A DNA stretch of 64,000 bases from Octopus bimaculoides (lineage: Eukaryota): NCBI RefSeq assembly GCF_001194135.2, contig NC_068994.1, forward strand, positions 38,325,134-38,389,133. Reading direction: 5' to 3'. The notes beneath the pieces were generated by a model. It searched no databases and was not told the DNA's origin. It saw only the letters and a list, made by a program, of their open reading frames with translations. Positions 15,150-64,000 of the stretch are shown here, in pieces (the stretch's first letter is position 1; each line of letters opens with the position of its first letter). Position numbers and translations under genes: made by a program.

Positions 15150-15691
15150 TGTGTATTTATACATACATGTATTTACATATATATAATTAAATTAAATCAA
15201 GTGTATAAAATTGTCTTAAAGGGATATTAGCATCTAAGTTCCCCAGTTTTATCCAGTGTATCAGTGAAAAACCAATGATGTTAGTTTTGCATTGATGGCT
15301 ATGGATATATTACCATTTCTGTAGGAGAAAAAGAAAACAGAGAAAGCGATATATAGACAATTTATTAGCATGTCTTTAATTTTGAGCTATATCAGACCCA
15401 TTGCACTGACAATTGTTTCTATGCCCAACCAATTTAATTTGAGAAATGAAATTAAATTCAATTTTCATATTGAATATCGTTAATTGGGCATTTCGTCAGG
15501 GGAAGAATTTAAAAGGAACTATATTCCAATGTGTTCTTTGACCCTTGTTAGACTCAGATATGTGTGTTTCAGCAACCAATGTATTTAAAACGGTTACTTG
15601 TGTATATGCAAATTAGTTAATACATTTGTTCACGTATACGTGTAATGTGTTGATAAACAAAAGTATCTGTTAGCTGAAATAATACTTTGAT

Positions 15692-18963: not shown

Positions 18964-19104
18964 CTCATCATGTCCAGCACTACCGACACTCCAACCATGA
19001 CTACTATCTGTGTGCGAAGACAACGTTGACATTTCAGTGATTTCATCAGCATTGTTTAGTTCTCTGTAACTTAGAGACATGCTTTCTTCTCTTGGAATAA
19101 ACAT
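18964..19104 (-). CDS. P1 coding exon 2 (MFIPREESMS...DSSHGWSVGSAGHDE), 141 bp
   Basis: Acceptor tctag|ATG at 19104, donor GAG|gtaagt at 18964; homologous to the 148-151 bp exon in the other five paralogs but 10 nt shorter at its 3' end. Confidence 0.8.
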
Positions 19105-19409
19105 CTAGAAACATAAAATAGATACATTGTATGCCATAATATTTCATCATGGTATTATTGTCATTTATAATCTCTCATTTTGCTTTTAAGCTGAAATATT
19201 TTAGAAATCTTGTGAGTCAGTAAAGAAAATTAAAGAGTAATTTAGAATCTACATTTTTAAGAAAAGAATTAAGCAAATGGAAAAATAATTTTTCTTTTAT
19301 ATTCTGCAACACAGCTTCAAAGGTTCTTGGTTAATTACAGCCAGCTTTATTGTTAACACTGGAATGTTGAAAGGAGAAATATTTTGAAATTAAAAGAAAA
19401 TTATCTTAC

Positions 19410-21800
19410 CTGTTGATGATGTCTTAATGTTGGGTTATCCCATCTTTCACCTGGCATGGTTCTGTAGTGAATATCTTCTCTATCTACCATTGGTTGTTGA
19501 GATTTCTTCAGGTTTTTCTCTATTGTGTACTGAACTCCAGGAGGAACACAAGTAGGATCAAATGTGTATTTTGATTGGATGTTTAATGTAGGCGTAACTT
19601 TATGGTACATATCAACACTACTATTATAGTTGCTATCTGTCTGCTTCAGTCTATGAACTATACAGATTGTTATAGAGATCACTATAACAATTGATACTAT
19701 CACAGCTGCTATAACAATAACAATCATCACATTCAATTGGTGACCATTACTTGATTCTGTTGTTGTCTTTGAAGGGGTCTTAAAAAACTTTATTGTGTTG
19801 TTACTAACTGTTAGAGTCAAAGACAAAGTTGTTGTTGATGACAGGACTGGATTACCACTGTCTTTCACACCTAATTCCAGTTCATAGAATCCAGCATCAT
19901 TTTGGTAAAGTGAGCGAGAGAAAGATAAGACACCAGAGTGATGGTTCATTTGAAATAAGTGTTTCTCATTGCCTTTGAGTATTTCATATGTGAGGAAGGC
20001 ATTGTGTTGACTGTCTCTGTCAGAGGCCCTAACAACTGTGATATCATGGTCAGAGTTGGGATGGTAGTGGACATTAAGATTGAAAGGGTTAACATTAGGG
20101 AAACTGAAATAGGGAGCATTGTCATTTAAATCTATAACCTCAACAACAACATTTGCTGTGTTCTCCAGTGATGGTGTTCCTTTATCTTTTACTAAAACCT
20201 TAAACTCATACATGTTCTTTTCTTCTCTGTCTAGTGACTCAGTTGTGGAAATAAATCCCACATCAGATATCTGAAATGGTAGAATATATTTACCATTAGA
20301 TAACAAAGAATAGGTTAATTGTCCTCCATCTCCAATATCTGGGTCTGTAGCATTGACATATCCAACAGGGAAGTCTTTGTGTTCATTTTCATAGGTGAGA
20401 AACTTAAATGTGTCCTGACTAAACTGAGGCTGTACATCATTTATGTCAGTGACCATCATAGAAAACTGTTTCTCTACTGTCAATGGAGGTAAACCATTAT
20501 CTTGACATTTAATTGTGAAATCAAATCTCTTCTCACTCTCTCTATCTATTTCACTCTTGACAACAATTTTGTATGTCTTTAAAGACAATGAGATTAGCTG
20601 AAGATATCTGTTTTGTAAATGACAGGTCACGTGTCCATTTTCTCCACTGTCATTGTCAGTAACTTTGACATAAGCAACATTTTTGCCAATACGAATTGCT
20701 TCTGACATTCTACCCATGTTTCCAGTTGACTTAGAGAAAAGACAGACATCAATGTTTGGTGGATTATTAAGATGACTGACACCATTTACAAAAACAGTGA
20801 CAGCTGTTGACATTGAAGGATTACCATTATCTCTTGCTTCAATAAACAATTTATTGATTTTTCCAAATTCAAATCCTTCCTTTATAAATAATTCTCCAGA
20901 TGTATGATTTAAAATAAAGAATTTCTGATCTTTATCAGAGGTGTCAGGATTGAATCTATATAGAACTTGTCCATTATTTCCTTGATCTAAGTCTGTAGCA
21001 GTCAAACTTAGAATAGGTTTATATTTGCTTTGTGGTTCTGCTACTGTCACATTGTAGATATTCTGAGGAAATACAGGTGGATTATCATTTTTATCTCTCA
21101 CCAATATATGAATGTCTAAATGTGTTTGCATTGGTGGTGTTCCTCCATCTGTTGCTATTAATTGCAGTTGGTAATTTTCTTTCTTTTCTCTGTCTAGATT
21201 TTGAAGCAAAATCAATTCAATTTTACTTTTACTGTTTGAAGGTGTTGAGACTGACAACTTAAATGCTTTGTCAGTATCATTCCTTAGTTTATAAGAAATC
21301 TTTGAGTTCTGAATACTGACATCTTTATCAATCGCATTTGGAATGATTTCTTTTGTTCCTATCAATATATTTTCATCGTATTGCAAGTGGAATTCTTTCT
21401 CTGGAAATATGGGATAATTATCATTAACATCTTCTATCATAACTTTGATTTTTATTATCTTCATAAAAGAATGCTCATACCGAACTGCTATTTTCAATAT
21501 CCTGAAACATTCTTCATCATATTGACAAAGAGTTTCTGTATCCAATATGGCAGCTGTATACAGTTGTCCTCCAGGTGTAACATTGAATAACTGAACAGTT
21601 CCCTCAGTACTACCCTGGAGTACATTAAATGTTAGTTTGTTGCTATCATTGTGAGACTCTATATTATCCAATAAGTGTGTATCAGTGACAATATCTCCAA
21701 TATAGCTGTGTGTATCATTATTCTCTTTCACATGGTACATATGATCCACACACCAACAATTATTAGGCAGCAATAACAACAAGAGTAATATCTTATTCAT
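19410..21800 (-). CDS. PCDH: Protocadherin P1, large coding exon (signal peptide, EC1-EC6, TM, proximal cytoplasmic tail); the only gap-free copy
   Basis: ORF 19401-21836. Cadherin motifs DVNDNYP, LDRE, DKNDNPP, IDRE, DINDVQP, DLNDNAP; EC1 Cys loop LCQYDEEC; TM VMIVIVIAAVIVSIVIVISITICIV. Acceptor ttgcag| at 21814, ATG at 21800, donor CAG|gtaag at 19410 (phase 0). Symbol is family-level only. Confidence 0.95.
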
Positions 21801-22129
21801 TTTCTTGTGATTATCTGCAATATAAAAAAATTGCATTGAATATGATAAATAATGACAAATATATAAAAATACACTTCATATTAATTACTACTCAGTGGTT
21901 TTTAAATCAATTTCTAAACTTAATACTAGTAGTTATGTTTTAATGAAAGGCACACTTCTGAATATTAAAAGAATACATGAGGTCAGATGATAATGACTGT
22001 TGCTAACTGCAAGTATCTTGGAGCAGAAATATGTTGCTGAATTATATATATATACACTGCATTATACACAAAACGTCTTATGATCAGTCTTGTACTTTAA
22101 ATGATCAAAATTAACCCATTATTTCTGCC

Positions 22130-26417: not shown

Positions 26418-26764
26418 TTAATGTAATGGTGTGGTGTTGTTTGGTGTAGATAGAATAGGTACCTGAACTATTGAAGGTACCTTTGGTAGTGTTGTTACTT
26501 TAGGTACAGCTGGTAGAGGTGGTTTATTATTTGAAGTAAAGAGACTTGTCATTGGCATTGTAGATGGTTGTTCAGTTATATGAGATGTGGTACCAGTTAT
26601 ATTCAAAGGTATTTGGTCAGGATGACAGACTGTGTTAGTATCAACGTTTGGATGGTAAGTATATCCATGGCATCCATTGTTATTATCTCCCCTCGATCTA
26701 TCCAGTGAATGTGAAAGTTGTTTTCTCCTATTCCATTTATGTTCAATTTGGTAACGACACAGAT
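26418..26764 (-). CDS. P2 last coding exon (DLCRYQIEHKWNRRKQL...KPPLPAVPKVTTLPKVP...TTPLH*)
   Basis: Acceptor tctag|atctg; open in phase 1 through to TAA at 26418; continuous with listed ORF 26418-26606. Confidence 0.85.
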
Positions 26765-28451: not shown

Positions 28452-28753
28452 CTAGAAACATAAAATAGATACATTGTATGCCATTATATTTCATCATGGT
28501 ATTATTGCCATTTATAATCTCTCATTTTGCTTTTAAGCTGAAATATTCTAGAAATCCTCATGTGAGTCAGTAAAGAAAATTAAAGAGTAATTTAGAATCT
28601 ACATTTTTAAGAAAAGAATTAAGCAAATGGAAAAATAATTTTTCTTTTATATTCTGCAACACAGCTTCAAAGGTTCTTGGTTAATTACAGCCAGCTTTAT
28701 TGTTAACACTGGAATGTTGAAAGGAGAAATATTTTAAAAGAAAATTATCTTAC

Positions 28754-31234
28754 CTGTTGATGATGTCTTAATGTTGGGTTATCCCATCTTTCACCTGGCA
28801 TGGTTCTGTAGTGAATATCTTCTCTATCTACCATTGGTTGTTGAGATTTCTTCAGGTTTTTCTCTATTGTGTACTGAACTCCAGGAGGAACACAAGTAGG
28901 ATCAAATGTGTATTTTGATTGGATGTTTAATGTAGGCGTAACTTTATGGTACATATCAACACTATTATAGTTGCTATCTGTCTGCTTCAGTCTATGAACT
29001 ATACAGATTGTTATAGAGATCACTATAACAATTGATACTATCACAGCTNNNNNNNNNNNNNNNNNNNNNNNNNNNNNNNNNNNNNNNNNNNNNNNNNNNN
29101 NNNNNNNNNNNNNNNNNNNNNNNNNNNNNNNNNNNNNNNNNNNNNNNNNNNNNNNNNNNNNNNNNNNNNNNNNNNNNNNNNNNNNNNNNNNNNNNNNNNN
29201 NNNNNNNNNNNNNNNNNNNNNNNNNNNNNNNNNNNNNNNNNNNNNNNNNNNNNNNNNNNNNNNNNNNNNNNNNNNNNNNNNNNNNNNNNNNNNNNNNNNN
29301 NNNNNNNNNNNNNNNNNNNNNNNNNNNNNNNNNNNNNNNNNNNNNNNNNNNNNNNNNNNNNNNNNNNNNNNNNNNNNNNNNNNNNNNNTTTGAAATAAGT
29401 GTTTCTCATTACCTCTGAGTATTTCATATGTGAGGAAGGCATTGTGTTGACTGTCTCTGTCAGAGGCCCTAACAACTATGATATCATGGTCAGAGTGGGG
29501 ATGGTAGTGGACATTAAGACTGAAAGGGTTAACATTAGGGAAACTGAAATAGGGAGCATTATCATTTAAATCCATAACCTCAACAACAACATTTGCTGTG
29601 TTCTCCAGTGATGGTGTTCCTTTATCTTTTACTAAAACCTTAAACTCATACATGTTCTTTTCTTCTCTGTCTAGTGACTCAGTTGTGGAAATAAATCCCA
29701 CATCAGATATCTGAAATGGTAGAATATCTTTTCCATTCGTCAACAGAGAATAGGTTAATTGTCCTCCATCTCCAATATCTGGGTCTGTAGCATTGACTTG
29801 TCCAACCGGGAAGGCTTTGTGTTCATTTTCATAGGTGAGAAACTTAAATATGTCCTGACTAAACTGAGGTTGTACATCATTTATGTCAGTGACCTCTATA
29901 GAAAACTGTCTCTCTACTTTTAATGGAGGTAAACCATTATCTTGACATTTAATGGTGAAATTAAATCTCTTCTCACTCTCTCTATCTATTTCACTCTTTA
30001 CAACAATTCTGTATTTCTTTTCAGACATTGAGATTAACTGAAGGTATTTATTTTGTAAATGACATTTCACTTGTCCATTTACGCCATTGTCATTGTCAGT
30101 AACTTTAACATATGAGACAAAGCTGTGACGTTTTGCTGCTTCTGAAATTACAGCTGTGTTTCCAGTTGACTCTATAACAAATTTGACTTTGATTTTGGGA
30201 GGATTGTTAAGGTGACTGATTCCAGTTACAAGAACAGTAGCAGCTGAAGACCTAGGAGTGTTATCATTATCTCTGGCTTCAACAATTATTTTGTAGGATT
30301 TTCCAAACTGAAATTCTTTTGTAATAAAGACGTCTCCAGTTACTTCATCTAATTTAAAACATTGTTTAAAATTACTTGGTGTTTTAGCATTAAACACATA
30401 AGAAATTCTTCCATTTTCCCCTGCATCTAAGTCGGTAGCAAACAACCTTACAATAGGTTTGTTTATTTCCTGTGTATCGTTTATAGTGACATTGTAGATA
30501 TTCTCTGAGAATATAGGAGAGTTATCATTTTCATCCACCACCAATATTTTTAAATTCAATGATCCTTCCTTTGGTGGAGATCCACCATCTGTGGCAATTA
30601 ACTGAAGATAATAAATATCCTTTGTCTCTCGGTCCAAGTTTTCTTCTAAAATCAGTTGCAGAAAATCATTGCCATCTGTTTTATTAGAAACCAACAATTT
30701 GAAAGGAATATTTTCTTCTTTGAGTCGATAAAATAGTTTAGAATTTTGAATACTGATATCATTATCAATTGCATTTGGAATTATCTTTCTTCCTAAGGAT
30801 ACATTTTCGTCAAATTGCATATTAACATCCTTGCGAATAAACATCGGATAATTATCATTGACATCTTCTATTATAACTTTGATTTCTAATATCCTGATAA
30901 CAGAATGGCCATGTTGAATAGCTATTTCTAATATCCTGAAACATTCCACATTATAATGACATAGAGTTTCTGCATCCAATATGGCAGCTGTATATATTTG
31001 TCCTCCGGGTGTAACATTAAACAACTGAACACTTCCATCTGTATTACCCTGGAGTATTTTAAATTTCAGTATGTCGCTGTTATCTTGAGACTGCATATTA
31101 TCCAGTAAATGTGTATCACTGACAATATCTCCAATATAACTGTGTATATCATTGTTCTCTTTCACATGGTAGATATGATCTACACACTGGCAGCTGCCAG
31201 CCATCAACAACATCAACAATACCACGGACAACAT
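28754..31234 (-). CDS. PCDH: Protocadherin P2, large coding exon (gap in EC6)
   Basis: ORF 28745-31297 with six-EC architecture and TM; acceptor ttttcag| at 31339; likely ATG 31234 (an in-frame ATG also at 31297); donor CAG|gtaag at 28754. Confidence 0.93.
29049..29388. other. Assembly gap; others at about 9924-10096, 27801-27810, 39160-39169, 44424-44544, 46032-46262, 53699-54126, 55335-55715, 62124-62718
   Basis: N runs; four of nine fall in EC5-EC6 coding sequence of P2-P5. Confidence 0.98.
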
Positions 31235-31435
31235 GGTTATAGTCTTCAATTCTAGTTTCAACAGGAATATATATGGACAATGATGTAAAGAAAACATCTA
31301 TCAATTATTTCTTGCTTGGTGAAATTGCTTTGCTTTATCCTGAAAAACATATATATTTTATATCGGTAAGCGAGAGGAAATTATGAAAACTTACATCAGT
31401 GGTATAAAATATATCAGTTATACAATCATTTAGGC

Positions 31436-37800: not shown

Positions 37801-37810
37801 TCAAACTTAC

Positions 37811-37958: not shown

Positions 37959-38374
37959 CTGAAAACACAAATCCATAATTAGGATATAGTAAAAAGGGTT
38001 GAAATATATGCGATATGTTATATATAACTAAAATAATTAATAATGGTTTTTGAATTATGTACACAGCTAGCAATTTTGTTGGGTCGGGGTGAAACTTGTT
38101 CATAATAACTATTTTTTATTTAACCAACCTCAGAGAGATAAAAGGCAAAGTTGGTCTTGCCAGGAGAAATACAACAAAGCATTTTCTCTAACTAGCCTCT
38201 GACACTAAACCCACCAACCTGATGAACACATAATTATAATCGATTAAAAATATTAATACAAAATGCACATTGTAGATAGAGCAGTTGAATTCTCATAGTA
38301 ACATGCAATCAAATGAAAACATGAGAAAAATCTTTATCTACATTTCAGAGAAAAAGATACTGAAAGCACCTCAC

Positions 38375-40739
38375 CAGTTGATGTCTTCTTAAAGTCAGAT
38401 CATCCCATCTACCACCTGATATAGCTGAGTAGAGAAAAATTTTTCTGTACACCATTTCTTCTTCAGATTTCTTCAGATCTTTCTCCATTGTGTTCTGAAC
38501 TTCAGGAGCAACACAAGTAGGATTGGACGTATATCTTGATTGCATATTTAATGTTAATGTAGGTGAAACGTTGTGGAACATAGCTCTACTATTATAGTTG
38601 CTATCTGTCTGCTTCAGTCTATGAACTATACAGATTGATATAGAGATCACAATAACAACTGATACTATCACAGCTGCTATAACAATAACAATCATCACAT
38701 TCAATTGGAGACCATTACTTGATTCTGTTGTTGTCTTTGAAGGGGTCTTAAACATCTTTGTGTTGTTACTAACTGTTAGAGTCAAAGACAATGTTGTTGT
38801 TGATGAGAAAACTGGATTCCCACTGTCTTTCACACCTAATTCCAGTTCATAGAATCCAGCATCATTTTGGTAAAGTGAGCGAGCGAAAGATAAGACACCA
38901 GAGTGATGGTTCATTTGAAATAAGTGTTTCTCATTACCTCTGAGTATTTCATATGTGAGGAAGGCATTGTGTTGACTGTCTCTGTCAGAGGCCCTAACAA
39001 CTGTGATATCATGGTCAGAGTGGGGATGGTAGTGGACATTAAGACTGAAAGGGTTAACATTAGGGAAACTGAAATAGGGAGCATTATCATTTAAATCCAT
39101 AACCTCAACAACAACATTTGCTGTGTTCTCCAGTGATGGTGTTCCTTTATCTTTTACTANNNNNNNNNNGTGACTCAGTTGTGGAAATAAATCCCACATC
39201 AGATATCTGAAATGGTAGAATATATTTACCATTAGATAACAAAGAATAGGTTAATTGTCCTCCATCTCCAATATCTGGGTCTGTAGCATTGACATATCCA
39301 ACAGGGAAGTCTTTGTGTTCATTTTCATAGGTGAGAAACTTAAATATGTCCTGAGTAAACTGAGGTTGTACGTCATTTATATCAGTAACCAGCATAGAAG
39401 ATTCTTTCTCCACTGTCAATGGAGGTAAACCATTATCTTGACATTTAATGGTGAAATTAAAGCTCTTCTCACTCTCTCTATCTATTTCACTCTTGACAAC
39501 AACTTTGTATTTCTTTTCAGAAATTGAGATTAGCTGAAGGTATTTATTTTGTAAATGACACTTCACTTGTCCATTTTCTCCACTGTCATTGTCAATAACT
39601 TCGACAAAAGCAACAAAGCTGTGAATTTGAATTGCTTCTGAAATGAGAACTGTGTTTCCAGTTGACTTGAAGAGAAATTTGACATCAATGTTTGGTGGAT
39701 TATTACGATGTGTGACACCATTTACCTGAACAATGGCTGTTGAGGACATAGGTGTATTACCACTATCTCTAGCTTCAACAAGCAATTTATAGAATTTTCC
39801 AAACTTGAATTCTTTCGTTATGTGCATTTCTCCTGTTATTCCATCTAAAGTAAAGCATTGCTTAACTTTATTTTGTGTTTTAGCACTAAAAGCATAAGAA
39901 ATTCTTCCATTTTCCCCTTCATCTATATCTGTTGCAGACAGTCTTACAATAGGCTTGTTCATTTGATGTGTGTCATTTACAGTTATATTATAAATATTCT
40001 GGATGAATACAGGGAAATTATCATTTTTATCTTCCACTAATATCTTTATATCTAGTACGCCTTCCTTTGGTGGTGTTCCTTCATCTTTGGCAATTAACTG
40101 AATTCTATAGATGTCTTTTATCTCACGATCTAAGTTACTTTCTAAATTTAGTTGTAATAAATTACTTCCATCTGTTTTATTAGAAACAAACAATTTGAAA
40201 GAAATACCTTCATACTCTACGAGTTGATAAGAGATTTTAGAATTCTGAATACTAACATCATTGTCAATTGCATTTGGAATTATTTCTTTTGTTCCAGCCA
40301 ATGCATTTTCGTCAAATTGTATTTGAAATTCATTAATTGGAAACAATGGATAATTGTCATTGACATCTTCTATCATAACTTTGATTTCTAATATCCTGAT
40401 GACAGAATGGCCATGTTGAATAGCTATTTCTAATATCCTGAAACATTCCACATTATAATGACATAGAGTTTCTGCATCCAATATGGCAGCTGTATATAGT
40501 TGTCCTCCCTGTGTAACATTAAATAACTGAACACTTCTATCAGTACCACCCTGGTGTATTTTAAATGTCAGTTTGTTGTTGTCATCCTTCGTCTGTATAT
40601 TATCCATTAAGTGTGTATCGGTGACAATATCTCCAATATAGCTGTGTGTATCATTATTCTCTTTCACATAGTACATATGATCCACACACCAGTAGCTGTT
40701 AGCCATCAGCACCACAATCAACAAAATCATTGACAGCAT
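38375..40739 (-). CDS. PCDH: Protocadherin P3, large coding exon (10-N placeholder gap in EC5)
   Basis: ORFs 39147-40805 and 38345-39232 join across the gap; paralogs show about 40 nt missing there. Acceptor ttacag| at 40841; ATG 40739; donor CTG|gtgag at 38375. Confidence 0.92.
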
Positions 40740-41902
40740 GACTACAGTCTTCAATAATGTTACCAAAAGGGATAGTAAGTGGATAACGATAATGAAATAT
40801 ATCAAACAAATGTTGCACCCTCAGTTTTCTTCTGTCACCTCCTGTAAGCATGTAAATTTATATTTCATTAAGCAAGAGAAAATTATAATATTTGCAGCAA
40901 TGATATAAATAGATTAATAATTCCATAAACATACTGATTTATATCAAAATCTCTGCATTATCTTTCATCTGTCTGTCTCAATGCATTTTCATCAATATTA
41001 TGTACTCTTTCACATATAACAATATTGTGTAATACTAGAAATATTAAGTAAATGCGTTTTATCATGAGTTAAATCTTTTTGCATTAGATTCTTCTACTCT
41101 TCAACAATTTTTGAACCATAATAATCTACAGGTCTGATATTATTAAACAGATGAGGAAAAAAATTTACATATGCAGGACTCATTTATTTCAAGTTGCCAC
41201 CCATGAAAGTGGAAACTATACTCAAATTAATTCAACACATGTGATATATACTTGAAGTTTTGAGCTGTAAATGAAAACTGTACAGTGCATGTGAATTTAC
41301 TAAATGGAGATCATATTGTTAAGTAGATCATCTTGAGTGAAATTCAAGACAGTCACAACTTTTAAATAATATACTTATAAATGCCTTGCTGTTGACTGCA
41401 AAGCTTTTGTAGTTTGAATAATTATGAATTTGGCTTTTTAACAATCTGCTGAAAATGTACTGTAGAAATCTTTAAATTATGTAGCCACAAAATTACCAAA
41501 TTAAAAATGAAAACACAGTTATTTAAACTACATGGTTTGAATTACTGCCCTTCGATACCACCCAAGTGAAAAGAAAAAATATTTGTGATAAACTTCTAAG
41601 TCTTTGTAATTATCATATATTCATTCTAGTCACTTACAATTAACACTTTGATTGCAGTTAAAATTATTTTCTAATCAAAGATTAACCCTCTCACACAGAT
41701 TCAAACTTTCATTAATTCTAGAATTCTCTGGAACACTAAAATGATAGATTCTAAAATTTAGTGCAATTATACCTTCTCTATTATTTACTATTCTTGATAG
41801 TACAATTTACATTCCATGTACGACTTCTGGAAATCATTATGAAATACAAATATTAGAAAATAACTATTTTTAAATCTCACGAGAGATATTCAGCAATAAT
41901 AC

Positions 41903-45358: not shown

Positions 45359-45568
45359 CTGGAAAAATTTATTACATAGTGCAGTATACAGTTACAATAA
45401 TAAGAAAGATTCTAATAATCTATGGTGTTTCATGTTTTGTAATAGAATATTTTAAGATATGAAATTATGAAGAACATTCTGAAATACTTATTTCTTCAAG
45501 ATAAACTATACACAAAAGCAGAATTTTCCCCAAAAGATTTCCAAACACATGAAAATTAATGAACTCAC

Positions 45569-47792
45569 CTGTTGTTTTCTTGAAGTTAGATCATCCCATC
45601 TATCAGCTGACATAGTTCTGCAGTGAATATCTTTCCTGTCTTCTATTGGTTGTTGAGATTTCTTCAGATTTCTCTCCAATGTGTTCTGAACTTTAGGATG
45701 AACACATGTGGGATCAAAAATATATTTTGATTGTATATTTAATGTAGGTGTAACCTTGTGGTACATATCAACACTACTATTATAGTTGCTATCTGTTCGC
45801 TTCAAACCATGAACTATACAGATTGATATAGAGATCACTATAACAACTGATAGGATCACAGCTGCTATAACAATAACAGTCATCACATTCAATTGGAGAC
45901 CATTACTTGATTCTGTTGTTGTCTTTGAAGGGGTCTTAAATATCTTTGATGTGTTGTTACTAACTGTTAGAGTCAAAGACAACATTGTTGTTGATGACAG
46001 AACTGGATTACCACTATCTTTCACACTTAGTNNNNNNNNNNNNNNNNNNNNNNNNNNNNNNNNNNNNNNNNNNNNNNNNNNNNNNNNNNNNNNNNNNNNN
46101 NNNNNNNNNNNNNNNNNNNNNNNNNNNNNNNNNNNNNNNNNNNNNNNNNNNNNNNNNNNNNNNNNNNNNNNNNNNNNNNNNNNNNNNNNNNNNNNNNNNN
46201 NNNNNNNNNNNNNNNNNNNNNNNNNNNNNNNNNNNNNNNNNNNNNNNNNNNNNNNNNNNNNNTATCTGAAATGGTAGAATATCTTTTCCATTAGATAATA
46301 GAGAATAGGTTAATTGTCCTCCATCTCCAATATCTGGGTCTGTAGCATTGACATATCCAACAGGGAAGTCTTTGTGTTCATTTTCATAGGTGAGAAACTT
46401 AAATGTGTCCTGACTAAACTGAGGCTGTACATCATTTATGTCAGTGACCATCATAGAAAACTGTTTCTCTACTTTCAATGGAGGTAAACCATTATCTTGA
46501 CATTTAATTGTGAAATCAAATCTCTTCTCACTCTCTCTATCTATTTCACTCTTGACAACAATTTTGTATTTCTTTACAGACAATGAGATTAGCTGAAGAT
46601 ATCTGTTTTGTAAATGACACTTCACTTGTCCATTTACTCCACCGTCATTGTCAGTAACTTTGACATATGCAATAAAGTTGTGAATTTGAGTTCCTTCTGA
46701 AATGACTGCTGTGTTTCCAGTCAACTTTAAAATGAATTTGACATCAATGTCTGGTGGATTATTAAGAAGACTGACACCGTTTACAAGAACAGTGGCTGTT
46801 GAGGACCTTGGTGGATTACCATTATCTCTAGCTTCAACAAACAATTTATATATCCTTCCGAACTGAAATTCTTTCTTCAGAAACAAATATCCAGTTACTT
46901 CATCTAATCTGAAAAATTGTACAGCATATTTTGATATGATGGCATTGAAAAAATAAGATATTAATCCATTTTCTCCTTCATCTAAATCTGTAGCTGACAG
47001 CTTTGCAATAGGTTTGTTTAACTGGTGTGTGTCATTTACAGTGACATTAATAGTATTTTGGGAGAACACAGGGAAATTATCATTAATATCTTTAATAATT
47101 ATTTTTATGTGAAGTACACCTTCCTTTACAGGTGATCCTTTATCTCTGGCAATTAACTGAATATTATACATGTCTTTTGTCTCACGATCTAAGACATTTT
47201 CTAGATTTAGTTGCAATAAATCAGAGCCATCCAAATTTTTAGAAACAAACAATTTAAAAGGAATATCTAAATCTTTGATCTGATAAGTGATTCTGGAATT
47301 CTTAATACTGACATCATTATCAATGGCATTTGGAATTATATATTTGGTTCCTATTAAATCATTTTCATCAAATTTTAAATGAAATTCCTTCTTTGGAAAC
47401 TTAGGATAATTATCATTGACATCATCTATTACAACTTTGATTTCTATTATCTTGAGAAAGGAATGGTCATGTTGAACTGCTATTTCCAATATTCTGAAAC
47501 ATTCCACATTATATTGGCATAGAATCTCTGCATCCAATATAGCAGCAGTGTACAGTTGTCCTCCAGGTGTAACATTAAATAACTGAACAGCTCCATCAAT
47601 ACTACCTTGTAGTACATTAAATGTCAGTTTGTTACTTTTATCCTGAGACTGTATATTATGCAGTAACTGTGTATCAGTGACAATATCTCCAATGTAGCTG
47701 TGTATATCCTTGTTCTCCTTCACATGGTAGATGTGATCCACACACCAGCAGTTGTCAGCCATCAACAATACCAACAAAACTATATATAACAT
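45569..47792 (-). CDS. PCDH: Protocadherin P4, large coding exon (gap over EC5-EC6)
   Basis: ORFs 46014-47807 and 45506-46291 flank the gap; acceptor ttttcag| at 47880; ATG 47792; donor CAG|gtgag at 45569. Confidence 0.92.
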
Positions 47793-50044
47793 GGCTACAG
47801 TCTCCAAGGTAATATATATATGTAATGTTGATGGAAACTATCAAAGAATTGTGACTTCTTGAATTTTCTTCTGTTGTCTCCTGAAAACATGTAAAGACGT
47901 ATAAACTTATTATGCATAAGAAAGGATGTAGTAATCAAGAAAATGCATATAATTTCCAACTGAAAGTAATGAGATATTGTATGATAGAATTACAAATTAT
48001 GCCAAGTTGTCAAGGTGACAGAATCATTAGCACACCAGACAAAATAATTAGCAGCATTTTGTCCATCTTTACATTCCAAATTCAAATTCTTCCATAGTCA
48101 ACTTTGCCTTTCATCCTTTCAGGATTGATAAAATGCCCATTGAACAGTACAGCTGATGTAATTGATTTACACCTTCCTCTATAATTGTTGACCTTGTGCC
48201 TAAATTTGAAATCAAATTACAAGTCATGCCAAAGACTCTACATATCATTGCATTCTCTCTCTCAATATGCATTTCCATCAACATATAGTGTGAACTCTTT
48301 CAACCAGTAGTTTAATACAATAGAATTTTATGATATTTCCCTTCCACACAAATAAGTTGTTTTTGGTGTGTAAAACTATTACATAAATGGTCTTGTCTCT
48401 TATTCTGTAACAACTATTTCTTAAAATTTCATCATTTCAGGAACAACTTCATCACTAAAACAAATGAAGGTAAGATATTTATATATGTTTGACTGGCTTA
48501 CATCTGTTAAATTATCTTAGATTCTTATTAAGTAAGCTTTAAAAAAAGTCTACACTGACACTTAAAGAACCCTTTTCAAATATCTGTCAAAACTCCCTCC
48601 AGCTACAAACTGCCATAATATTTAAAAAGAAGACACATTGGAAAATATGTATATCAAAGTACAGTATAACACACAAAAAATAAAAATGTAATCATCATGG
48701 CCAAAACTGCCTTTCATCATTGATTTGTTCAATCAGAAACAACTTGGGATTAAAAGGCAGTTGTGACTCAAAGTATAATTAGCCTTTCCACTGAAATGAT
48801 ATTTCTAGAAATTCTCTGCAATTAATCTGATGGTACATGTATCTTTTCAAAATACTCTCATAAATATTTTATGATTAGCATTAAGTTTTGCAGTCTGAAG
48901 AACAACCAGCTGAGGTTTTTAGCAATCTGCTATAGAGAGAAGACCATAATCGTTGCTCTAACAGGCTAAAAGCTCAATATGCAACAGGGGTTGTATACTA
49001 GTGCCATACTTTACGAGTTTCACAACACTATTTATGCCAGGATAGCACAAAAGTATCTTCTACTAAAATATCTGTTACTAAACGTACTTATTCTATGCCA
49101 CAAGGCTATGAGTCAAGTCACAACAATGAAGCTGCAACCTTTACAGTTAGACATTATTGATAATTTTTTAGATGTGATTCATAAACTTTTACTGAGATGA
49201 AAATTGAATAAATATTTTAACATTTTCTTCCATTACTAAAATGGACTCAACTCATTTAGACTTGCTTTTCTGATTCATGTTAAACCAACACACTGGATGG
49301 TTGAGATCAAGGATGTGATTTGGTTAAACACACCACATGAATCTTTTTATCATACACTTGTTTCAGTTATTAGACAGTGGCCATGCTGGGGCACTAGCCT
49401 GATAATATATTCTCTATTTACAACCTTAGTACTCCCCAATCGTTTTATTCCAAAAGTTATTAAATTACAGAACATTTAGAATGAGTCTCTGTTTCATAGA
49501 TATTATTAGTTTTTAAGACTCATACTTACTGAGTTACATTTGGAAAAAAAATTTGAAAAATAAACACAACAAAATGAGTTATTCCCCTTTAATATTGACC
49601 TAAAAAAAAAAAGAGAGAACAAGCAATAATTGCCAAAATAGCCTGAGCTGAAGAGATAATTTCCTTCATTACATCTACCTTCTAATTACAGATATTTAAC
49701 CATTCTGTTATATTTAACACCATTCTCTCATTAACATTAGCCATTCCAATCATAGTAAAACCTCCAGTAATTCCAGAATTTACAGCAAGAGTAAAATTAC
49801 AAATTTTAAAACTTAGTGAAATTATAGCTTTCCTAAAATTTACTATTCAAGATAGTCTTTGAGAAATACCATTTATATTCCAGATCTGATATATGGAAAT
49901 CGTGATGAGGTACAAATATCTGAATAGAATAACATTCTATTATTACATCCTGTATGTACCAATAGAATGAACTTGTGAATAAATAAAACAGTTTAAAAAC
50001 ATACAAACGTTTACACAACAGAATAATTTCTAATAAGTACTTAC

Positions 50045-54245: not shown

Positions 54246-54837
54246 ATTTAGCCAAGTAAACTGAGCACAGGAACAATAATGAACAGAGTATGTAATTCAA
54301 TATGAAAACTGCATCTGAGTTCTGTAAGAACTATCAAATTGTATTTGATAGTTCACCAATATTATACAACCAAAATACAAAAAATTATTTACAGATAAAA
54401 ATAGCAAACATGTTTTATTTACATCTATTGTTTACTGCACTTGTGTTTATATAATAATACTAGTAGAGATTAACAATTATTTCAAATAGTGTAAATATAA
54501 TATTTCTCCAACCATAAAGATTGTGAAAGTCAATAAATATTTGTTGCTTCTCAATTTCATTTGCAGCACTCATATGGCGCTTTGCTACAAAAAATGAACT
54601 GAAAAGAGTCAGAAAATAGATGCAGAGAAGATACAGGTACAATAGGGGGAACAATTTAAATGTAAAATAGTGTGATTTGTATATAAAGAAAACAATTTTT
54701 AAATATTTTCTTAAGATGATTTCTCTGAAATATATATATACAAAGCAGTTATACTTCATGCAGGAACATATAAATAGATAAAACATGCAAGAACAACTCT
54801 TTTTCTTTGATTTTCCAAATAAATATAAGCAACTCAC

Positions 54838-57385
54838 CTGTTGAGGTCTTTTAAAGGTCAGATCATTCCATCTATCAGCTGACATATTCCTGCAGTGAAT
54901 ATCTTCTCTGTCTACCTTTGGTAGTTGAGATTTCTTCACATTTCTCTCCATTGTGTAGTGAATTCCAGGAGGAACACAAGTAGGATCAAATATATATTTT
55001 GATTGGATGTTTAATGTAGGTGTAACCTTGTGGTACATATCAACACTACTATCATAGTTGCTATCTGTCTGCTTCAGTCTATGAACTATACAGATTGATA
55101 TAGAGATCACTATAACAACTGATACTATCACAGCTGCTATAACAATAACAATCATCACATTCAATTGGAGACCATTACTTGATTCTGTTGTTGTCTTTGA
55201 AGGGGTCTTAAATATCTTTGATGTGTTGTTACTAACTGTTAGAGTCAAAGACAAAGTTGTTGTTGATGACAGAACTGGACGGCCACTGTCTTTCACACCT
55301 AATTCCAGTTCATAGAATCCGGCATCGTTTTGGTNNNNNNNNNNNNNNNNNNNNNNNNNNNNNNNNNNNNNNNNNNNNNNNNNNNNNNNNNNNNNNNNNN
55401 NNNNNNNNNNNNNNNNNNNNNNNNNNNNNNNNNNNNNNNNNNNNNNNNNNNNNNNNNNNNNNNNNNNNNNNNNNNNNNNNNNNNNNNNNNNNNNNNNNNN
55501 NNNNNNNNNNNNNNNNNNNNNNNNNNNNNNNNNNNNNNNNNNNNNNNNNNNNNNNNNNNNNNNNNNNNNNNNNNNNNNNNNNNNNNNNNNNNNNNNNNNN
55601 NNNNNNNNNNNNNNNNNNNNNNNNNNNNNNNNNNNNNNNNNNNNNNNNNNNNNNNNNNNNNNNNNNNNNNNNNNNNNNNNNNNNNNNNNNNNNNNNNNNN
55701 NNNNNNNNNNNNNNNAAATCCATAACCTCAACAACAACATTTGCTGTGTTCTCCAGTGATGGTGTTCCTTTATCTTTTACTAAAACCTTAAACTCAAACA
55801 TGTTCTTTTCTTCCCTGTCTAGTGACTTAGTTGTGGAAATAAATCCCACATCAGATATCTGAAATGGTAGAATATCTTTTCCATTAGATAATAGAGAATA
55901 GGTTAATTGTCCTCCATCTCCAATATCTGGGTCTGTAGCATCAACATATCCCACAGGGAAGTCTTTGTGTTCATTTTCATAGGTGAGGAACTTATATATG
56001 TCTTGACTAAACTGAGGTTGTACATCGTTTATGTCAGTAACCAACATTGAAAATTGTCTCTCTACTTTCAATGGAGGTAAACCATTATCTTGACATTTAA
56101 TGGTGAAATTAAATCTCTTCTCACTCTCTCTATCTATTTCACTCTTGACAACAACTTTGTATTTCTTTTCAGACTCTGAGATTAGCTGAAGATATCTATT
56201 TTGTAAACGACACTTCACTTGTCCATTTTCTCCATTGTCATTGTCAATAATTTCGACAAAAGCAACAAAGCTGTGAATTTGAATTGCCTCTGAAATGAGA
56301 ACTGTGTTTTCAGTTGACTTTAAGAGAAATTTGACATCAATGTTTGGTGGATTATTACGATGTGTGACACCATTTACCTGAACAATGGCTGTTGAGGACA
56401 TAGGTGTATTACCACTATCTCTGGCTTCAACAGTTATTCTATACATTTTTCCAAATTGAAATTCATTCGTTATAAACATTTCTCCTGTTGTCTTATATAA
56501 TTTAAAACACTGTTTGATTTTATTTGGGGTTTTAGCACTAAAAATGTATGAAATTTTTCCATTTACCCCTTCATCTAAATCAGTAGCCAACAACCTCAGA
56601 ACAGGTTTGTGTATCTGATGTGTGTCATTTATTGTCACATTGTAGATATTTTGGGAAAATACAGGGGAATTATCATTTTTATCCTCCACTAATATTTTTA
56701 TATCCAGTATACCTTCTTTTGGTGGAGATCCCCCATCTGTGGCAATCAATTGAAGATTATAAATGCTTTTAGTCTCACGATCTAAGTTACTTTCTAGAAT
56801 TATCTGTAATACACTAGATTCATCTGATCTCTTCAAAATGAACAATTTGAACGGAATATGTAAATCTCTTAGCTGATATTTGATTTTTGAGTTCTGAATA
56901 CTGACATCATTATCAATGGCATTTGGAAGTATTTCTCTTGTTCCTGTCAATACGTTTTCATAGAGTTGCAGGTGAAATTCATTAACTGGAAAGAAGGGAT
57001 AATTGTCATTGATGTCTTCTATTATAACTTTGATTTTTAATATCTTGATAAAAGAATGACTATGTTGAACTGCTATTTCCAATATCCTAAAACATTCCAC
57101 ATTATATTGGCACAGAATTTCTGCATCCAGTACGGCTGTTGTAATTAGGTGTCCTTCAGGTGTAACATTGAATAACTGAATACTTCCATCAGTACCACCC
57201 CGGATAACATTAAATGTAACTTTGTTGCTATCATCCTGAGTCTGTATATCATCCAGTAAGTGTGTATCAGTGACAATATTTCCAATAAAACTGTGTATGT
57301 CAATGTTCTCTTTCACATGGTAGATATGATCCACACACCAGCAACTGTCAGCTGTCAACAGTACCAACAAAACTATGAATAACAT
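54838..57385 (-). CDS. PCDH: Protocadherin P5, large coding exon (gap in EC6)
   Basis: ORFs 55310-57400 and 54460-55740 flank the gap; tandem acceptors at about 57484 and 57492; ATG 57385; donor CAG|gtgag at 54838. Confidence 0.92.
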
Positions 57386-59720
57386 GGCTTCAGTCCTCAA
57401 TTCTGTTGCAAGGATATGAATGTATAATGTTGACGGAATCTATCAAAAAATTGAGACTTCTTCAATATATTCTTCTGTTTTCTCCTGTAAACCTGTAAAA
57501 CATGTAAACTTATTATGCATAAGAAAGGATGTAGTAATTAAGAAAACTCATATAATTTGTAAAATTATAAATTATGGCAAGGTGGCAGAATCATTAGCAC
57601 ACTAGACAGAATTATTGGCAGCATTTTGTTCATCTTTACATTCCAAATTCAAATTCTTCCATAGTTAACATTGACTTTCATCCTTTTGGTGCTTATAAAC
57701 AAAGCAGCCATTGAACAGTATGGTCAATGTAATTTATTTACCCCTTCCACCAAACCTGCTGGCCTTGTGCCAAAATTTCAAGTCAAATTACAAGTTATGC
57801 CAAAGACTCTACAAATCATTCTAATCTTTCTCTTGGCATGCATTTCCAGCAACATATAGTATAAACACTTTCCACCAGTAGTTTCAGGAACCTACTTTAT
57901 CATTAAAACAAATGAAGGAAAGATATTTACATAAGGTCAACTGGCCTAGAATTTTATGATACTATTTTCCTCCTACACAAACAAGTTATGTTTTGATATC
58001 TAAAAATATTACATCACATGTCTGATCTCTTATTTGGCAAAATATCTTAAATTTTCATCATTTTAGAAACCTAATTTATCACTTCAGCAATCGAAAAGAT
58101 ATATACATAAATTTCACTTGTCTACATCCCTTAAATCATTTAATTTTCTCATTAGGTAAAATAAAAAATAGCATCTACACTGACACTCAAAGACCCCCTT
58201 TACAAATATTTGTTGAAACTGCTTTTTCACAAACTGTCATAATATTTAAAAAGGGAACACATTGGATGATATATATCAAAGTCCACAAAGAAACGGAAAA
58301 CTCCATAAAAAAAAAAAAAAAAAGAGATATGGTTATTATGGTTAGAACTGCCTTTGATCATAGATCTGTTCAATCAGAAACAATTTGGAAATAAAAGGCA
58401 GCTGTGACTCATGTAACGTATGATTAGCTTTTCCACTGAAATCATATTTCTATAAATTATCCATAATTAGTCTGATTAATTAATGATGAATGCATTTTCC
58501 AGAAATGCATTTATAGATACATTATGGTCAGCAGTAACTTTTGTAGTCTGAAGATATCCAGTTGAGCTTTTCAGCAATTTGTTGTAGATAGAAAAATCAT
58601 AACTTTTGCTCTAACATGCTAAAAACCTCATATGCAATAGGGATTCATTTTCCATTTTTCTTACTCTATACTAATGCCATACTTAACAAGTTTCACAACA
58701 CTAGTTGTGCCAGGATATTGCGAAAATATCTTTCTGATTATTCTACTACTAAGAATATTTATAGTAGGCCAGAAGGATATGCCTCAAGCTACTACAATGA
58801 AGTTGCAGCCTTTACATTTAGACACAATTCATAAGTTTTTAGACATGGTTCATAAACTATTGTTGAGATGGAAATTTTAAAAATTATTTATAGTGTGTTC
58901 TTCCATTTCTCAACTCATTTCAACTTGTTTTTTTTTTGTTTGTTTTTTTTTTTTTTGCTTCATTTTAAAACTAACCACTGTATGATGGATTAAGGATGCC
59001 ATTTGCTTTAACATCATGACCTGGATCTTTCTATCTTTTATCCATTTAAGTCATAGTTCTGAGGCCATACTAAGGTACCACCTTGGTACTTCTAATGGGT
59101 TTGCACTTTTACAAAATTAATTTTAATTCTAGACTTTTACTATTGGTTTCTGTTTCAGATATCGATCGTTTTTCAGATTCATAGTTACTGAGTTACATTC
59201 TGTGATTAGCTTAACTGCAAAAAAAAGCTTCTGAGAAACCGAAAATACTAACAGAACCCTATCTAAATGAGTTGTTCCCCTTTGCTCATGACCTACAAAA
59301 AGTATCAAAACAAAACATTTGCTTAACAGTCTAAGCTGAAAACATAATTTTCTTCATCACATCTCCCTTCTAACTACAAATATTTAACCACTCTGTTATA
59401 TTTAACATCATTCTCCCATTAAACATTAGCCATTCTAATCATAGTCAAACCGCCAGTAATTCCAGAATTTGCAGCAAGAGTAAAATTACAAATTTCAAAA
59501 ATTTAGTGAAACTTTCCTGAAATTTACTATTCTAGATTGTCTTTAAGAAATACGTTTATATCATGACATGGTACAAATATCTGCGAAAAATTCTAACATT
59601 AAGTAAACTTATTCTATTATTACATCCTGTATGTAATAATAGAATGAACTTGTGAATAAATAAAACATTTTAAAACATACAAACGTTTACACATCAGAAT
59701 AAGTTTTAAAAAGAACTTAC

Positions 59721-61873: not shown

Positions 61874-63222
61874 CTATAAATATAAATCCAATGGATCATC
61901 ATGATGTTCTGGACATTCAAATGAAGAAAAACATTTCAAAAATTTAGACAATTTTAAGGAACCTTCATTTTGGATGTTAATTTCTAATCTTTCTGTACTC
62001 TAAAATCTAAACTTTCTGAAATCTACAAATCAATTGCTAGAAAGTTGACCTCAAAACATCAGTAAGAATATTGGAAGCAATTTTCAGTATATCTTATTTA
62101 CTCTATCTCCAGGATATCTATATNNNNNNNNNNNNNNNNNNNNNNNNNNNNNNNNNNNNNNNNNNNNNNNNNNNNNNNNNNNNNNNNNNNNNNNNNNNNN
62201 NNNNNNNNNNNNNNNNNNNNNNNNNNNNNNNNNNNNNNNNNNNNNNNNNNNNNNNNNNNNNNNNNNNNNNNNNNNNNNNNNNNNNNNNNNNNNNNNNNNN
62301 NNNNNNNNNNNNNNNNNNNNNNNNNNNNNNNNNNNNNNNNNNNNNNNNNNNNNNNNNNNNNNNNNNNNNNNNNNNNNNNNNNNNNNNNNNNNNNNNNNNN
62401 NNNNNNNNNNNNNNNNNNNNNNNNNNNNNNNNNNNNNNNNNNNNNNNNNNNNNNNNNNNNNNNNNNNNNNNNNNNNNNNNNNNNNNNNNNNNNNNNNNNN
62501 NNNNNNNNNNNNNNNNNNNNNNNNNNNNNNNNNNNNNNNNNNNNNNNNNNNNNNNNNNNNNNNNNNNNNNNNNNNNNNNNNNNNNNNNNNNNNNNNNNNN
62601 NNNNNNNNNNNNNNNNNNNNNNNNNNNNNNNNNNNNNNNNNNNNNNNNNNNNNNNNNNNNNNNNNNNNNNNNNNNNNNNNNNNNNNNNNNNNNNNNNNNN
62701 NNNNNNNNNNNNNNNNNNCCTCCAACCATAAAGATTTGTTACTTCTTAATTTCTTATGCAGCATTCACATGATGTTTTTCTAGGAATACCCAAAATTGAA
62801 AAGAATGCAAGAATACATTTGGAAAAGATAGATGAACGATAAGGAGAATGATTTAAATGTAAAATAGTGAGAGTGGTCATCATCATCTTTTAATATCAGC
62901 TCTCCATGCTCACATTGGATGGACAGTATGACAGGGGTTAGCTTGCTTGAGAGCTGTCCATGCTCCATCTCTCAATTTTTGCATAGTGTCTATGAAGGGA
63001 CGCCCATCCTAACATCAATCATGGCACCCAACATGGGAACTTTTATGTGGATCCTCTATAGGCAATCTTACATGGCACCTGCAAAGGTGTATTTACATGG
63101 AACTAAAATGATTGCTCTGAAATATGTATAAAGTATTTATATTTCATGCAAGAACACAAAAACAAATGAGACATACAACTATAGTTTCTTCCTTGATATT
63201 TGAAAAAATATAAGCAATTTAC

Positions 63223-64000
63223 CTGTTGAGGTCTGTTTAAAGTAAAATCATTCCACCTCTCATTTGGTATGGTTCTGCAGTGAATATCTTCCATGTCAAC
63301 CTTTGATTGTTGAGATGGCTTCAGTTTTCTGGACATTGTGTAATGAACTCCAGGCGGAACACAGGTAGGATCAAACATATATTTTGATTGGATGTTTAAT
63401 GTAGGTGTAACCTTGTGGTACATTTCAACACTACTATCATAGTTGCTATCTGTCTGCTTCAGTCTATGAACTATACAGATTGATATAGAGATCACTATAA
63501 CAACTGATACTATCACAGCTGCTATAACAATAACAATCATCACATTCAATTGGAGACCATTACTTGATTCTGTTGTTGTCTTTGAAGGGGTCTTAAATAT
63601 CTTTGTGTTGTTACTGACTGTTAGAGTCAAAGACAAAGTTGTTGTTGATGACAGAACTGGACTACCACTGTCTTTCACACCTAATTCCAGTTCATGGAAT
63701 CCAGCATCATTTTGGTAAAGTGAGCGAGAGAAAGATAAGACACCAGAGTGATGGTTCATTTGAAATAAGTGTTTTTCATTACCTCTGAGTATTTCATATG
63801 TGAGGAAGGCATTGTGTTGACTGTCTCTGTCAGAGGCCCTAACAACTGTGATATCATGGTCAGAGTTGGGATGGTAGTGGACATTAAGACTGAAAGGGTT
63901 AACATTAGGGAAACTGAAATAAGGAGCATTATCATTTAAATCCATAACCTCAACAACAACATTTGCTGTGTTCTCCAGTGATGGTGTTCCTTTATCTTTT
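63223..64000 (-). CDS. PCDH: Protocadherin P6, 3' part of large exon (end of EC5, EC6, TM, proximal tail); 5' part outside window
   Basis: ORF 63103-63945 (DLNDNAP...TM...RPQQ); donor CAG|gtaaat at 63223. Confidence 0.9.

Follow-up and report, generated by a model that had tools for sequence, protein, structure and literature searches.

The stretch of DNA analyzed here (the window) comprises 64,000 nucleotides of Octopus bimaculoides contig NC_068994.1 (RefSeq assembly GCF_001194135.2, forward-strand positions 38,325,134 to 38,389,133). It holds a tandem array of protocadherin (Pcdh) genes whose products have lost most calcium-binding motifs at the linker between the third and fourth extracellular cadherin (EC) repeats. 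Cephalopod protocadherins are a classic example of a neuronal recognition family that has expanded convergently, and to our knowledge nothing is known about their binding mode. The list of open reading frames (ORFs) revealed six gene copies within the 64 kb, arranged head-to-tail and all on the minus strand, which are referred to as W1–W6. The first exon of W1 (19401..21836) is complete, and its 811-aa ORF encodes a signal peptide, EC1–EC6, a transmembrane helix and the start of the cytoplasmic tail. Paralogous first exons are found in W2 (28745..31297, broken by an assembly gap with an N run at 29049-29388), W3 (38345..40805, read as two overlapping ORFs owing to a 10-N gap at 39160-39169), W4 (45506..47807, N run at 46032-46262), and W5 (54460..57400, N run at 55335-55715). 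W6 (63103..63945) is the 3' part of a sixth first exon (EC5-EC6 linker, EC6, and transmembrane helix), and its EC3-EC4 junction is unreadable because that region falls past the window end.

All five inter-repeat linkers can be read in W1, and its six EC repeats and single transmembrane helix represent the architecture of the octopod Pcdh family. Pfam Cadherin was detected in five stretches of this protein (E = 5.9e-67), and EC1 matched Cadherin_2 below threshold (E = 1.5e-7, no single stretch passing). AlphaFold modeled a helix at residues 701-733 in addition to six beta-sandwich blocks. The best database matches of W1 are protocadherins of Octopus vulgaris, O. sinensis, O. bimaculoides, and Argonauta hians (66-78% identity), and identity to the remaining octopod Pcdh family falls to ~50%. 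W4 is the same as an O. bimaculoides protein (UniRef A0A0L8FTE7, P0018) in all motif segments compared, including the last exon.

The calcium ligands of cadherin linkers are distributed over several short motifs. Sites 1 and 2 are formed by the Glu of XEX, the Asp and Glu of DRE, residues 1 and 4 of DxNDN, and the second Asp of DXD; site 3 is formed by residue 3 of DxNDN, the backbone of residue 5, the DXD pair, the GxN loop, and the Asp of XDX. A preliminary description of this DNA had reported that the EC3-side motifs, which coordinate the three linker Ca2+, are absent from EC3-EC4 (20740-20900, W1 residues ~313-366), with FxFG in place of LDRE and G[VI][ST][HL][LR]NNPP in place of DxNDNxP. 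Mapping of the motifs bore this out in all five readable paralogs. In W1 (junction 20649..20873), FEFG is located at 20862-20873, GVSHLNNPP at 20757-20783, and TDND at 20649-20660. The corresponding positions are 30302-30313 (FQFG), 30197-30223 (GISHLNNPP), and 30089-30100 (TDND) in W2 (30089..30313); 39798-39809 (FKFG), 39693-39719 (GVTHRNNPP), and 39585-39596 (IDND) in W3 (39585..39809); 46857-46868 (FQFG), 46752-46778 (GVSLLNNPP), and 46644-46655 (TDND) in W4 (46644..46868); and 56450-56461 (FQFG), 56345-56371 (GVTHRNNPP), and 56237-56248 (IDND) in W5 (56237..56461), all on the minus strand. Retention of DXD (TDND or IDND) and XDX in EC4 also proved correct for every paralog: the XDX-top motif CQDNG, in which the site-3 ligand Asp446 (W1 numbering) is kept, lies at 20493..20507 in W1, 29933-29947 in W2, 39429-39443 in W3, 46488-46502 in W4, and 56081-56095 in W5. 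The other four linkers are canonical, as had been described (EC1-2 D[VI]NDN, EC2-3 D[KEI]NDN, EC4-5 DINDV, and EC5-6 DLNDN). An additional change, missing from the earlier account, affects the Glu of the EC3 XEX motif (NVTVAEP at 21033..21053 in W1, minus strand), which is Glu in W1 only and Asp in W2–W5; most other octopod Pcdhs have Asn, Ser, or His at this position.

The register of this alignment was checked in three ways: phmmer comparison with the solved structure of PcdhgB4 (6e6b), MAFFT alignment with 120 homologs, and hmmalign to the family profile. In the phmmer alignment FEFG lies opposite LDFE and GVSHLNN opposite VLDENDN of PcdhgB4, and the other two methods agree. Because the subfamily represented in the window has a two-residue deletion just past the DRE site, the register of F-x-F-G versus L-D-R-E is uncertain by up to two residues, and no register recovers a conserved acidic pair. 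W1–W5 are recent duplicates and therefore are not independent observations.

The preliminary description had treated the degeneration as a property of the five paralogs. It is indeed present in all five, but it is family-wide: no canonical three-Ca2+ linker was found at EC3-EC4 in any of ~172 octopod Pcdhs sampled, and the other four linkers are of the canonical type. This sample comprised 125 aligned sequences (the 5 from the window and 120 matches, the latter corresponding to ~52-73 distinct paralog groups), 43 units retrieved with a divergent seed, and four representatives of 50%-identity clusters, from O. bimaculoides, O. vulgaris, O. sinensis, and Argonauta. When the ten canonical ligand positions were scored in each linker of the 125 aligned sequences, the five EC3-side positions of EC3-EC4 were almost never canonical. 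The central Asp of DxNDN (residue 4) is Asn in 125/125, with no exception in the entire sample; residue 1 is Asn, Ser, or Thr in 121 of the 125; residue 3 is Gln, His, or Leu; the XEX Glu is kept in five sequences; and the DRE site is variable and mostly uncharged. On the EC4 side, the DXD and XDX ligands are Asp in 97-100% (Asp394 100%, Asp396 97-100%, Asp446 100%), and Gly398, Asn400, and Gly401 are conserved in 91-100%. The other four linkers are mostly 96-100% canonical over the ten positions, the exceptions being the DRE Asp of EC2-EC3 and EC4-EC5 (Asn in ~10%) and the fifth DxNDN position. As judged from these counts, the motif loss at EC3-EC4 is far beyond chance. The same pattern was observed in the 43 further units and the four cluster representatives.

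The usual octopod linker reads V-N-V-I-N-Q-Q-N-N-(A/P)-P-x-I-D. The window subfamily, with G-V-S-H-L-N-N-P-P and with F-x-F-G at the DRE site, includes 22 sequences from both Octopus and Argonauta and is older than the split between these two genera. Asn357 and Pro360 (W1 numbering) are invariant in octopod Pcdhs, and Asn358 is 84-100% conserved. Flanking residues specific to octopods include Asn351, Asp363 (85-91% Asp), and Phe366 (90-95%); position 363 is Asn, Thr, or Lys in bivalves and Ser or Thr in vertebrates. Another conserved residue, Lys329, is common to bivalves and gastropods as well: molluscs in general have a basic residue (Lys or Arg) at this position, and 74% of vertebrate units have Glu. 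This conservation of linker and flanks implies a remodeled joint under selection rather than decay.

Several side observations concern the same proteins. Residues 329, 351, 363, and 366 (~20739-20852) might form a compensating salt bridge or supply a new ligand. The EC4-EC5 linker (W1 residues 464-470, ~20427-20447) has the form DxNDV, with Val for the fifth Asn, in 119/125 octopod Pcdhs; the fifth residue is mostly Asn in bivalves and gastropods (His in a fifth of units) and Asn in vertebrates. The EC1-EC2 linker is DxNDH in 62 of 103 general octopod Pcdhs. Both of these changes are probably neutral lineage signatures, because both positions bind Ca2+ through the backbone. In one small octopod clade (P0017, P0019, and P0021 from O. 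sinensis and A. hians), EC4 has TDDN and a five-residue deletion which removes the GxNG loop; thus, site 3 may be lost and the EC3-EC4 linker may be fully Ca2+-free in these proteins.

To place the octopod state, other taxa were compared. The searches differed in reach: the W1 seed matched Octopus and Argonauta only, the divergent octopod seed again octopods, and a bivalve seed bivalves, gastropods, and vertebrates. A search of representative sequences was ranked by summed score; its top 150 were mostly giant multi-EC cadherins and fused vertebrate Pcdh models, and it contributed the vertebrate controls and one bivalve seed. The bivalve/gastropod set (n = 64), seeded with this Tegillarca protein, consisted of 24 named Pcdhs (from Mizuhopecten, Ylistrum, Pecten, Saccostrea, Crassostrea, Mytilus, Pinctada, Solemya, Sinanodonta, Mya, Mercenaria, Haliotis, and Patella) and 40 close relatives, the latter all nearer to bivalves and gastropods than to octopods. 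In this set the EC3-EC4 linker has the form D-x-[HG]-N-N-P-P. Its fourth residue is Asn in 64/64, the third-position Asn is found in none of the 64 (Gly, His, Thr, or Ser instead), and the DRE Asp likewise in none. The XEX Glu (63/64) and the first Asp (64/64) are retained, and the DRE Glu is often kept as well. The EC4 motifs are also kept, except for one unit with Asn at the second DXD Asp, and the EC2-EC3 and EC4-EC5 linkers are canonical. In the seed unit (P0260, Tegillarca granosa) six linkers were found, corresponding to seven EC repeats in a delta1-like arrangement, and database annotations call some of its relatives PCDHD1 or "protocadherin delta 1." The octopod family has six EC repeats, and the odd linker is the third in both.

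All 38 vertebrate clustered Pcdh units were canonical at all ten positions of EC3-EC4. The same linker is canonical in fused gene models from lungfish, coelacanth, manta ray, bonefish, teleosts, birds, and mammals, and in the human delta1 protocadherin PCDH1 it carries three Ca2+ (PMC6769022). The degeneration is therefore general to the molluscs sampled but not to all protocadherins, so that the objection which the preliminary description had itself named, degeneration in protocadherins at large, applies in part. A metagenome scan detected Pcdh relatives at 21-40% identity only (best segment), and all Pcdh-like long single-exon genes among them (L001-L015 and others) were canonical at the third linker, which gives weak support for a mollusc-specific change. 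A feature specific to this gene cluster was also considered and is ruled out by the ~172 octopod and 64 bivalve/gastropod units.

Together, the EC3-EC4 linkers form a graded series: canonical in vertebrates, partly degenerate in bivalves and gastropods, strongly degenerate in octopods, and more divergent still in the window subfamily. Judging from sequence comparison, the EC3-EC4 state is an old trait of every octopod Pcdh sampled, with a milder form in clam and snail Pcdhs. A stepwise origin may be proposed, in which the vertebrate-type canonical state came first. The bivalve/gastropod step would then have removed the Asp of DRE and residues 3 and 4 of DxNDN (the latter, the central Asp, being replaced by Asn), giving a probable two-Ca2+ state. 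The XEX Glu and the first Asp would have followed at the octopod step, and the window subfamily, already separate before Octopus and Argonauta split, would have diverged further in the last step.

In octopods, every charged site 1 or 2 ligand contributed by EC3 or the linker has been lost, whereas all EC4-derived site 3 ligands, the fifth linker residue, and the following Pro are kept. Both features define the partially Ca2+-free type of linker known from PCDH15 EC5-EC6, and because of this match we consider it rather likely that octopod EC3-EC4 is a conserved partial linker that would act as a flexible hinge. Such a joint would bind one Ca2+ at site 3 instead of three, and its flexibility, located between an EC1-EC3 module and an EC4-EC6 stalk, would not depend on Ca2+. 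The premise of the preliminary description that Ca2+-deficient linkers of PCDH15 and Drosophila N-cadherin bend or flex is supported by published structures (PMC5120219, PMC7547225). Its suggestion of a kink at EC3-EC4 held up in part: the joint appears Ca2+-deficient, but the loss is confined to the EC3 side, unlike the fixed ~90-degree kinks of the fully Ca2+-free linkers it had cited, and no sharp kink is predicted.

Structure prediction bears on this point. The AlphaFold2 model of whole W1 (m76d11698270e; pLDDT 74.9, pTM 0.48) superposes on crystal EC3-6 fragments at 6-8 A and on EC1-4, EC1-5, and EC1-6 crystals at ~50 A (TMt ~0.43). Since the EC3-6 part fits and the fragments starting at EC1 do not, the model departs from the extended shape N-terminal of EC3 and not at EC3-EC4. 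The fold-back near the canonical EC2-EC3 linker would pair EC2 with EC3 and EC1 with EC4, as in the vertebrate antiparallel trans dimer; an artefact is one possible cause, and intermolecular couplings satisfied within one chain are another. When EC3-EC4 was modeled alone, pLDDT was 88.8 and pTM 0.54, with the five models ranging from 73.8 to 88.8. Its distance to Ca2+-bound vertebrate EC3-EC4 pairs was mostly 4.0-6.4 A (two Pcdha7 chains at 7.7-7.9 A; TMq 0.53-0.73), compatible with two repeats roughly in line, in a non-canonical geometry and with poorly defined orientation. The predictor ignores ions, and the pTM values and model spread lack a canonical-linker control fragment; thus, the models argue only against a confidently predicted sharp kink.

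Several observations weigh against the one-Ca2+ hinge. Occupancy of site 3 is suggested by motifs only, and most octopods carry Gln or His, and the window subfamily Leu, at the third linker residue, which in canonical linkers is itself a site-3 ligand. The predicted EC3-EC6 arrangement is crystal-like, with no obvious break at EC3-EC4. A rigid, protein-mediated interface could explain equally well why N-N-x-P, Asp363, and Phe366 are so strongly conserved. In addition, the cephalopods surveyed are octopods, and the other named taxa are bivalves, gastropods, and vertebrates.

The strongest alternative, although an unlikely one in our view, is that EC3-EC4 is a rigid Ca2+-independent interface with one fixed orientation, straight or kinked, like Drosophila N-cadherin EC2-EC3 or PCDH15 EC9-EC10. 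An Asn/Gln-rich linker, the aromatic F-x-F, Leu356, Lys329 or Lys326, Asp363, and Phe366 would be candidates for side-chain packing and for hydrogen or salt bridges. Precedents for such Ca2+-free fixed-bend linkers, with ~390 A2 buried, are documented (PMC5120219). The invariance of Asn357 and Pro360 and the 84-100% conservation of Asn358, Asp363, and Phe366 fit this view, as do the hydrophobic residues that the window subfamily has where charged ligands were and the crystal-like EC3-6 layout. However, the known rigid Ca2+-free linkers have none of the five motifs, whereas DXD and XDX are 97-100% kept here, arguing that site 3 is still bound. A packed interface would also hardly be expected to tolerate the broad range of residues that octopod paralogs have at the DRE site (Pro, Ser, Lys, Thr, and others), and the low pTM of the EC3-EC4 model and the disagreement among its five versions do not point to a single defined orientation.

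A linker that is functionally canonical despite its sequence seems improbable to us. In this case, Asn/Gln carbonyls together with acidic residues (DXD, XDX, Asp363, and an occasional Glu or Asp at the DRE site) would hold two or three Ca2+ at seawater-like concentrations, and mechanics and dimer geometry would be as in vertebrates. Cephalopod extracellular Ca2+ is indeed high (~10 mM, seawater-like), the exchanges D->N and N->Q are nearly isosteric (N-Q-Q-N-N vs D-x-N-D-N), and the AlphaFold models are roughly extended. The milder bivalve state also speaks for it, since it retains the first Asp and the Glu of XEX, often with that of DRE, and site 2 may therefore well survive there. On the other hand, sites 1 and 2 are poorer by four to five negative charges in octopods, and Ser, His, and Leu in the linker of the window subfamily, along with Gly in place of the DRE Glu, cannot coordinate like Asp or Asn. 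Smaller losses than these already reduce PCDH15 linkers to one or two Ca2+, bound with affinities between 45 and >100 uM (PMC7547225).

That the motif loss is mere decay (pseudogenes, mis-assembly, or misalignment of no functional meaning) is hardly credible: although the window is a gap-rich draft with nine N runs and has breaks in four of the five paralogous ORFs, the ORF of W1 is uninterrupted and the breaks in W2–W5 occur only at N runs, chromosome-scale assemblies of four species encode annotated proteins with the same residues, every other motif is intact and the altered linker itself is highly conserved, and three alignment methods give one register, so that pseudogene decay and misregistration are effectively refuted.

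The position of the junction may bear on recognition. Mean pairwise identity among the window paralogs is 0.74 in EC1, 0.62 in EC2, 0.60 in EC3, 0.77 in EC4, 0.93 in EC5, and 0.90 in EC6, rising sharply from ~residue 400 (mid-EC4) on among W1–W5. This profile is consistent with homogenization or strong constraint of the membrane-proximal part and diversification of EC1-EC4. The specificity of vertebrate clustered Pcdhs resides in an antiparallel EC1-4 interface, according to bioRxiv 10.1101/493106. Given the variability, which in outline is vertebrate-like, EC1-EC4 may still be the recognition region of octopus Pcdhs, with the putative hinge inside it. The preliminary description had suggested that the trans dimer may differ in geometry from that of vertebrates; if anything, the variability profile favors an unchanged recognition region. 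We put forward only tentatively, and regard as doubtful, the further idea that mollusc Pcdhs place a Ca2+-poor hinge within the recognition region that is rigid in vertebrates, octopods carrying this to the extreme, and so use a different recognition architecture. If this is true, an EC1-EC3 recognition module might be mounted on a flexible EC4-EC6 stalk, for example, or the dimer might stiffen the hinge only upon a correct match, and the Ca2+ dependence of cephalopod Pcdh recognition would differ too.

The remaining parts of the array were also located. On the minus strand, each gene has its own second exon, at 18964-19104 (W1), 28302-28451 (W2), 37797-37961 (W3), 45209-45361 (W4), 53133-53279 (W5), and 61727-61873 (W6), and third exons were found for W2–W6 (26421-26765, 34486-34803, 43662-44000, 51394-51672, and 60878-61135). 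These private cytoplasmic exons are short and match annotated C-termini of Octopus Pcdhs; one reads MFVPREESMSPGYRE... and the other DLCRYQ...PPLPAVPKVTTLPKVPS. The presence of separate downstream exons in each gene indicates whole-gene duplication with no shared constant exons, in agreement with PMC9068888. For W1, only the second exon was found in the window, and a third was not. The zone in which it would be expected (~14500-17800, minus strand) holds ORFs at 15670-16065, 16913-17410, and 17343-17792. RRLHWYGHV and GRPRKT within the ORFs of this zone are motifs typical of LINE-type retroelements, a tentative identification, the Pfam scan giving no significant match. No Pfam match was found in the inter-genic ORFs of the window. 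Low-complexity, microsatellite-like stretches with runs of TH, YV, and CV codons are present at 9757-12214 and 44238-44985, and short inter-genic ORFs are repeated.

The octopus Pcdh literature that was searched makes no mention of calcium-site loss or of the Ca2+ sites of these proteins. Partial Ca2+-free linkers are already known; a lineage-wide case in a prominent Pcdh family is new. A lineage-conserved odd linker in the middle of the presumed recognition region is a concrete structural difference from vertebrate Pcdhs, and a caution against homology modeling of octopus Pcdh dimers directly on vertebrate EC1-4 structures. The hinge reading makes definite predictions for this joint, namely, one Ca2+ versus three and flexibility independent of Ca2+. 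The suggested graded series (three Ca2+ in vertebrates, ~2 in bivalves, ~1 in octopods) would offer a natural experiment on the relation of linker calcium to cadherin mechanics and recognition. Even if a hinge has no effect on binding, D4->N at EC3-EC4 would remain a family signature of mollusc Pcdhs, and N-x-x-N-N-x-P-x-I-D one of octopod Pcdhs.

Among known systems, the closest likeness is to PCDH15 EC5-EC6, which was also the best PCDH15 stretch for octopus EC3-EC4 by phmmer (5w1d residues 112-323, 6bxu residues 6-217). In that linker, XEX is changed to YTD, DRE to IVG, and DXNDN to PPNNQ, and DXD and XDX are kept; crystals revealed a single Ca2+ at site 3 and three inter-repeat orientations, and flexibility persists at high Ca2+ according to the authors (PMC7547225; Choudhary et al. 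2020). Modified XEX, loss of DRE, a degenerate DXNDN which retains NN (PPNNQ vs octopod NQQNN or SHLNN), and intact DXD and XDX are shared by both. However, PCDH15 has 11 EC repeats and bears mechanical load as a tip-link cadherin, and its linker is an isolated case in one protein, whereas the octopus linker belongs to a neuronal Pcdh with six EC repeats, lies within the presumed recognition region (EC1-4), is fixed across >100 paralogs, and is known from sequence.

The PCDH15 EC2-EC3 and EC3-EC4 linkers, with two Ca2+, resemble the bivalve/gastropod state in that the DRE Asp is lost, DXNDN is altered, and XEX and the first Asp are kept. In these PCDH15 linkers, sites 2 and 3 are filled, with lower affinity and more flexibility (PMC7547225). 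The substitutions themselves differ (NYE and DGDDL in PCDH15 vs L-x-Y-E and D-x-H/G-N-N in bivalves and gastropods), and the mollusc side of this comparison consists of sequences.

In the fully Ca2+-free linkers of PCDH15 EC9-EC10 (L-shaped) and Drosophila N-cadherin EC2-EC3 (V-shaped; 3UBH, 3UBG), all five motifs are lost and no Ca2+ is bound, and the bend is fixed, with special structural elements and a buried interface of ~390 A2 (PMC5120219). They share with octopus EC3-EC4 the loss of acidic ligands from the N-terminal repeat and the linker, which is conserved across species in both. On the other hand, the next repeat in them lacks DXD and XDX too (PCDH15 EC10 has AIN and DSL instead), whereas octopus EC4 keeps DXD, GxNG, and XDX. 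Octopus EC3-EC4 has therefore not lost all five motifs, with the P0017/P0019/P0021 clade as a possible exception. Their bend is fixed at ~80-90 degrees, whereas in the octopus models no sharp bend is predicted and orientation is of low confidence.

Finally, the EC3-EC4 junctions of vertebrate clustered and delta Pcdhs (6e6b, 5szl, 5iu9, 6vg4, 6bx7) occupy the homologous position in homologous six- or seven-EC proteins, at 27-33% identity, and there form part of the antiparallel EC1-EC4 trans dimer. The variability profile of the window paralogs, highest in EC2 and EC3, is similar to theirs. The difference lies in the linker itself, which has all ten ligands in the 38 vertebrate units and three Ca2+ in PCDH1, whereas D4->N and further losses characterize the mollusc proteins.

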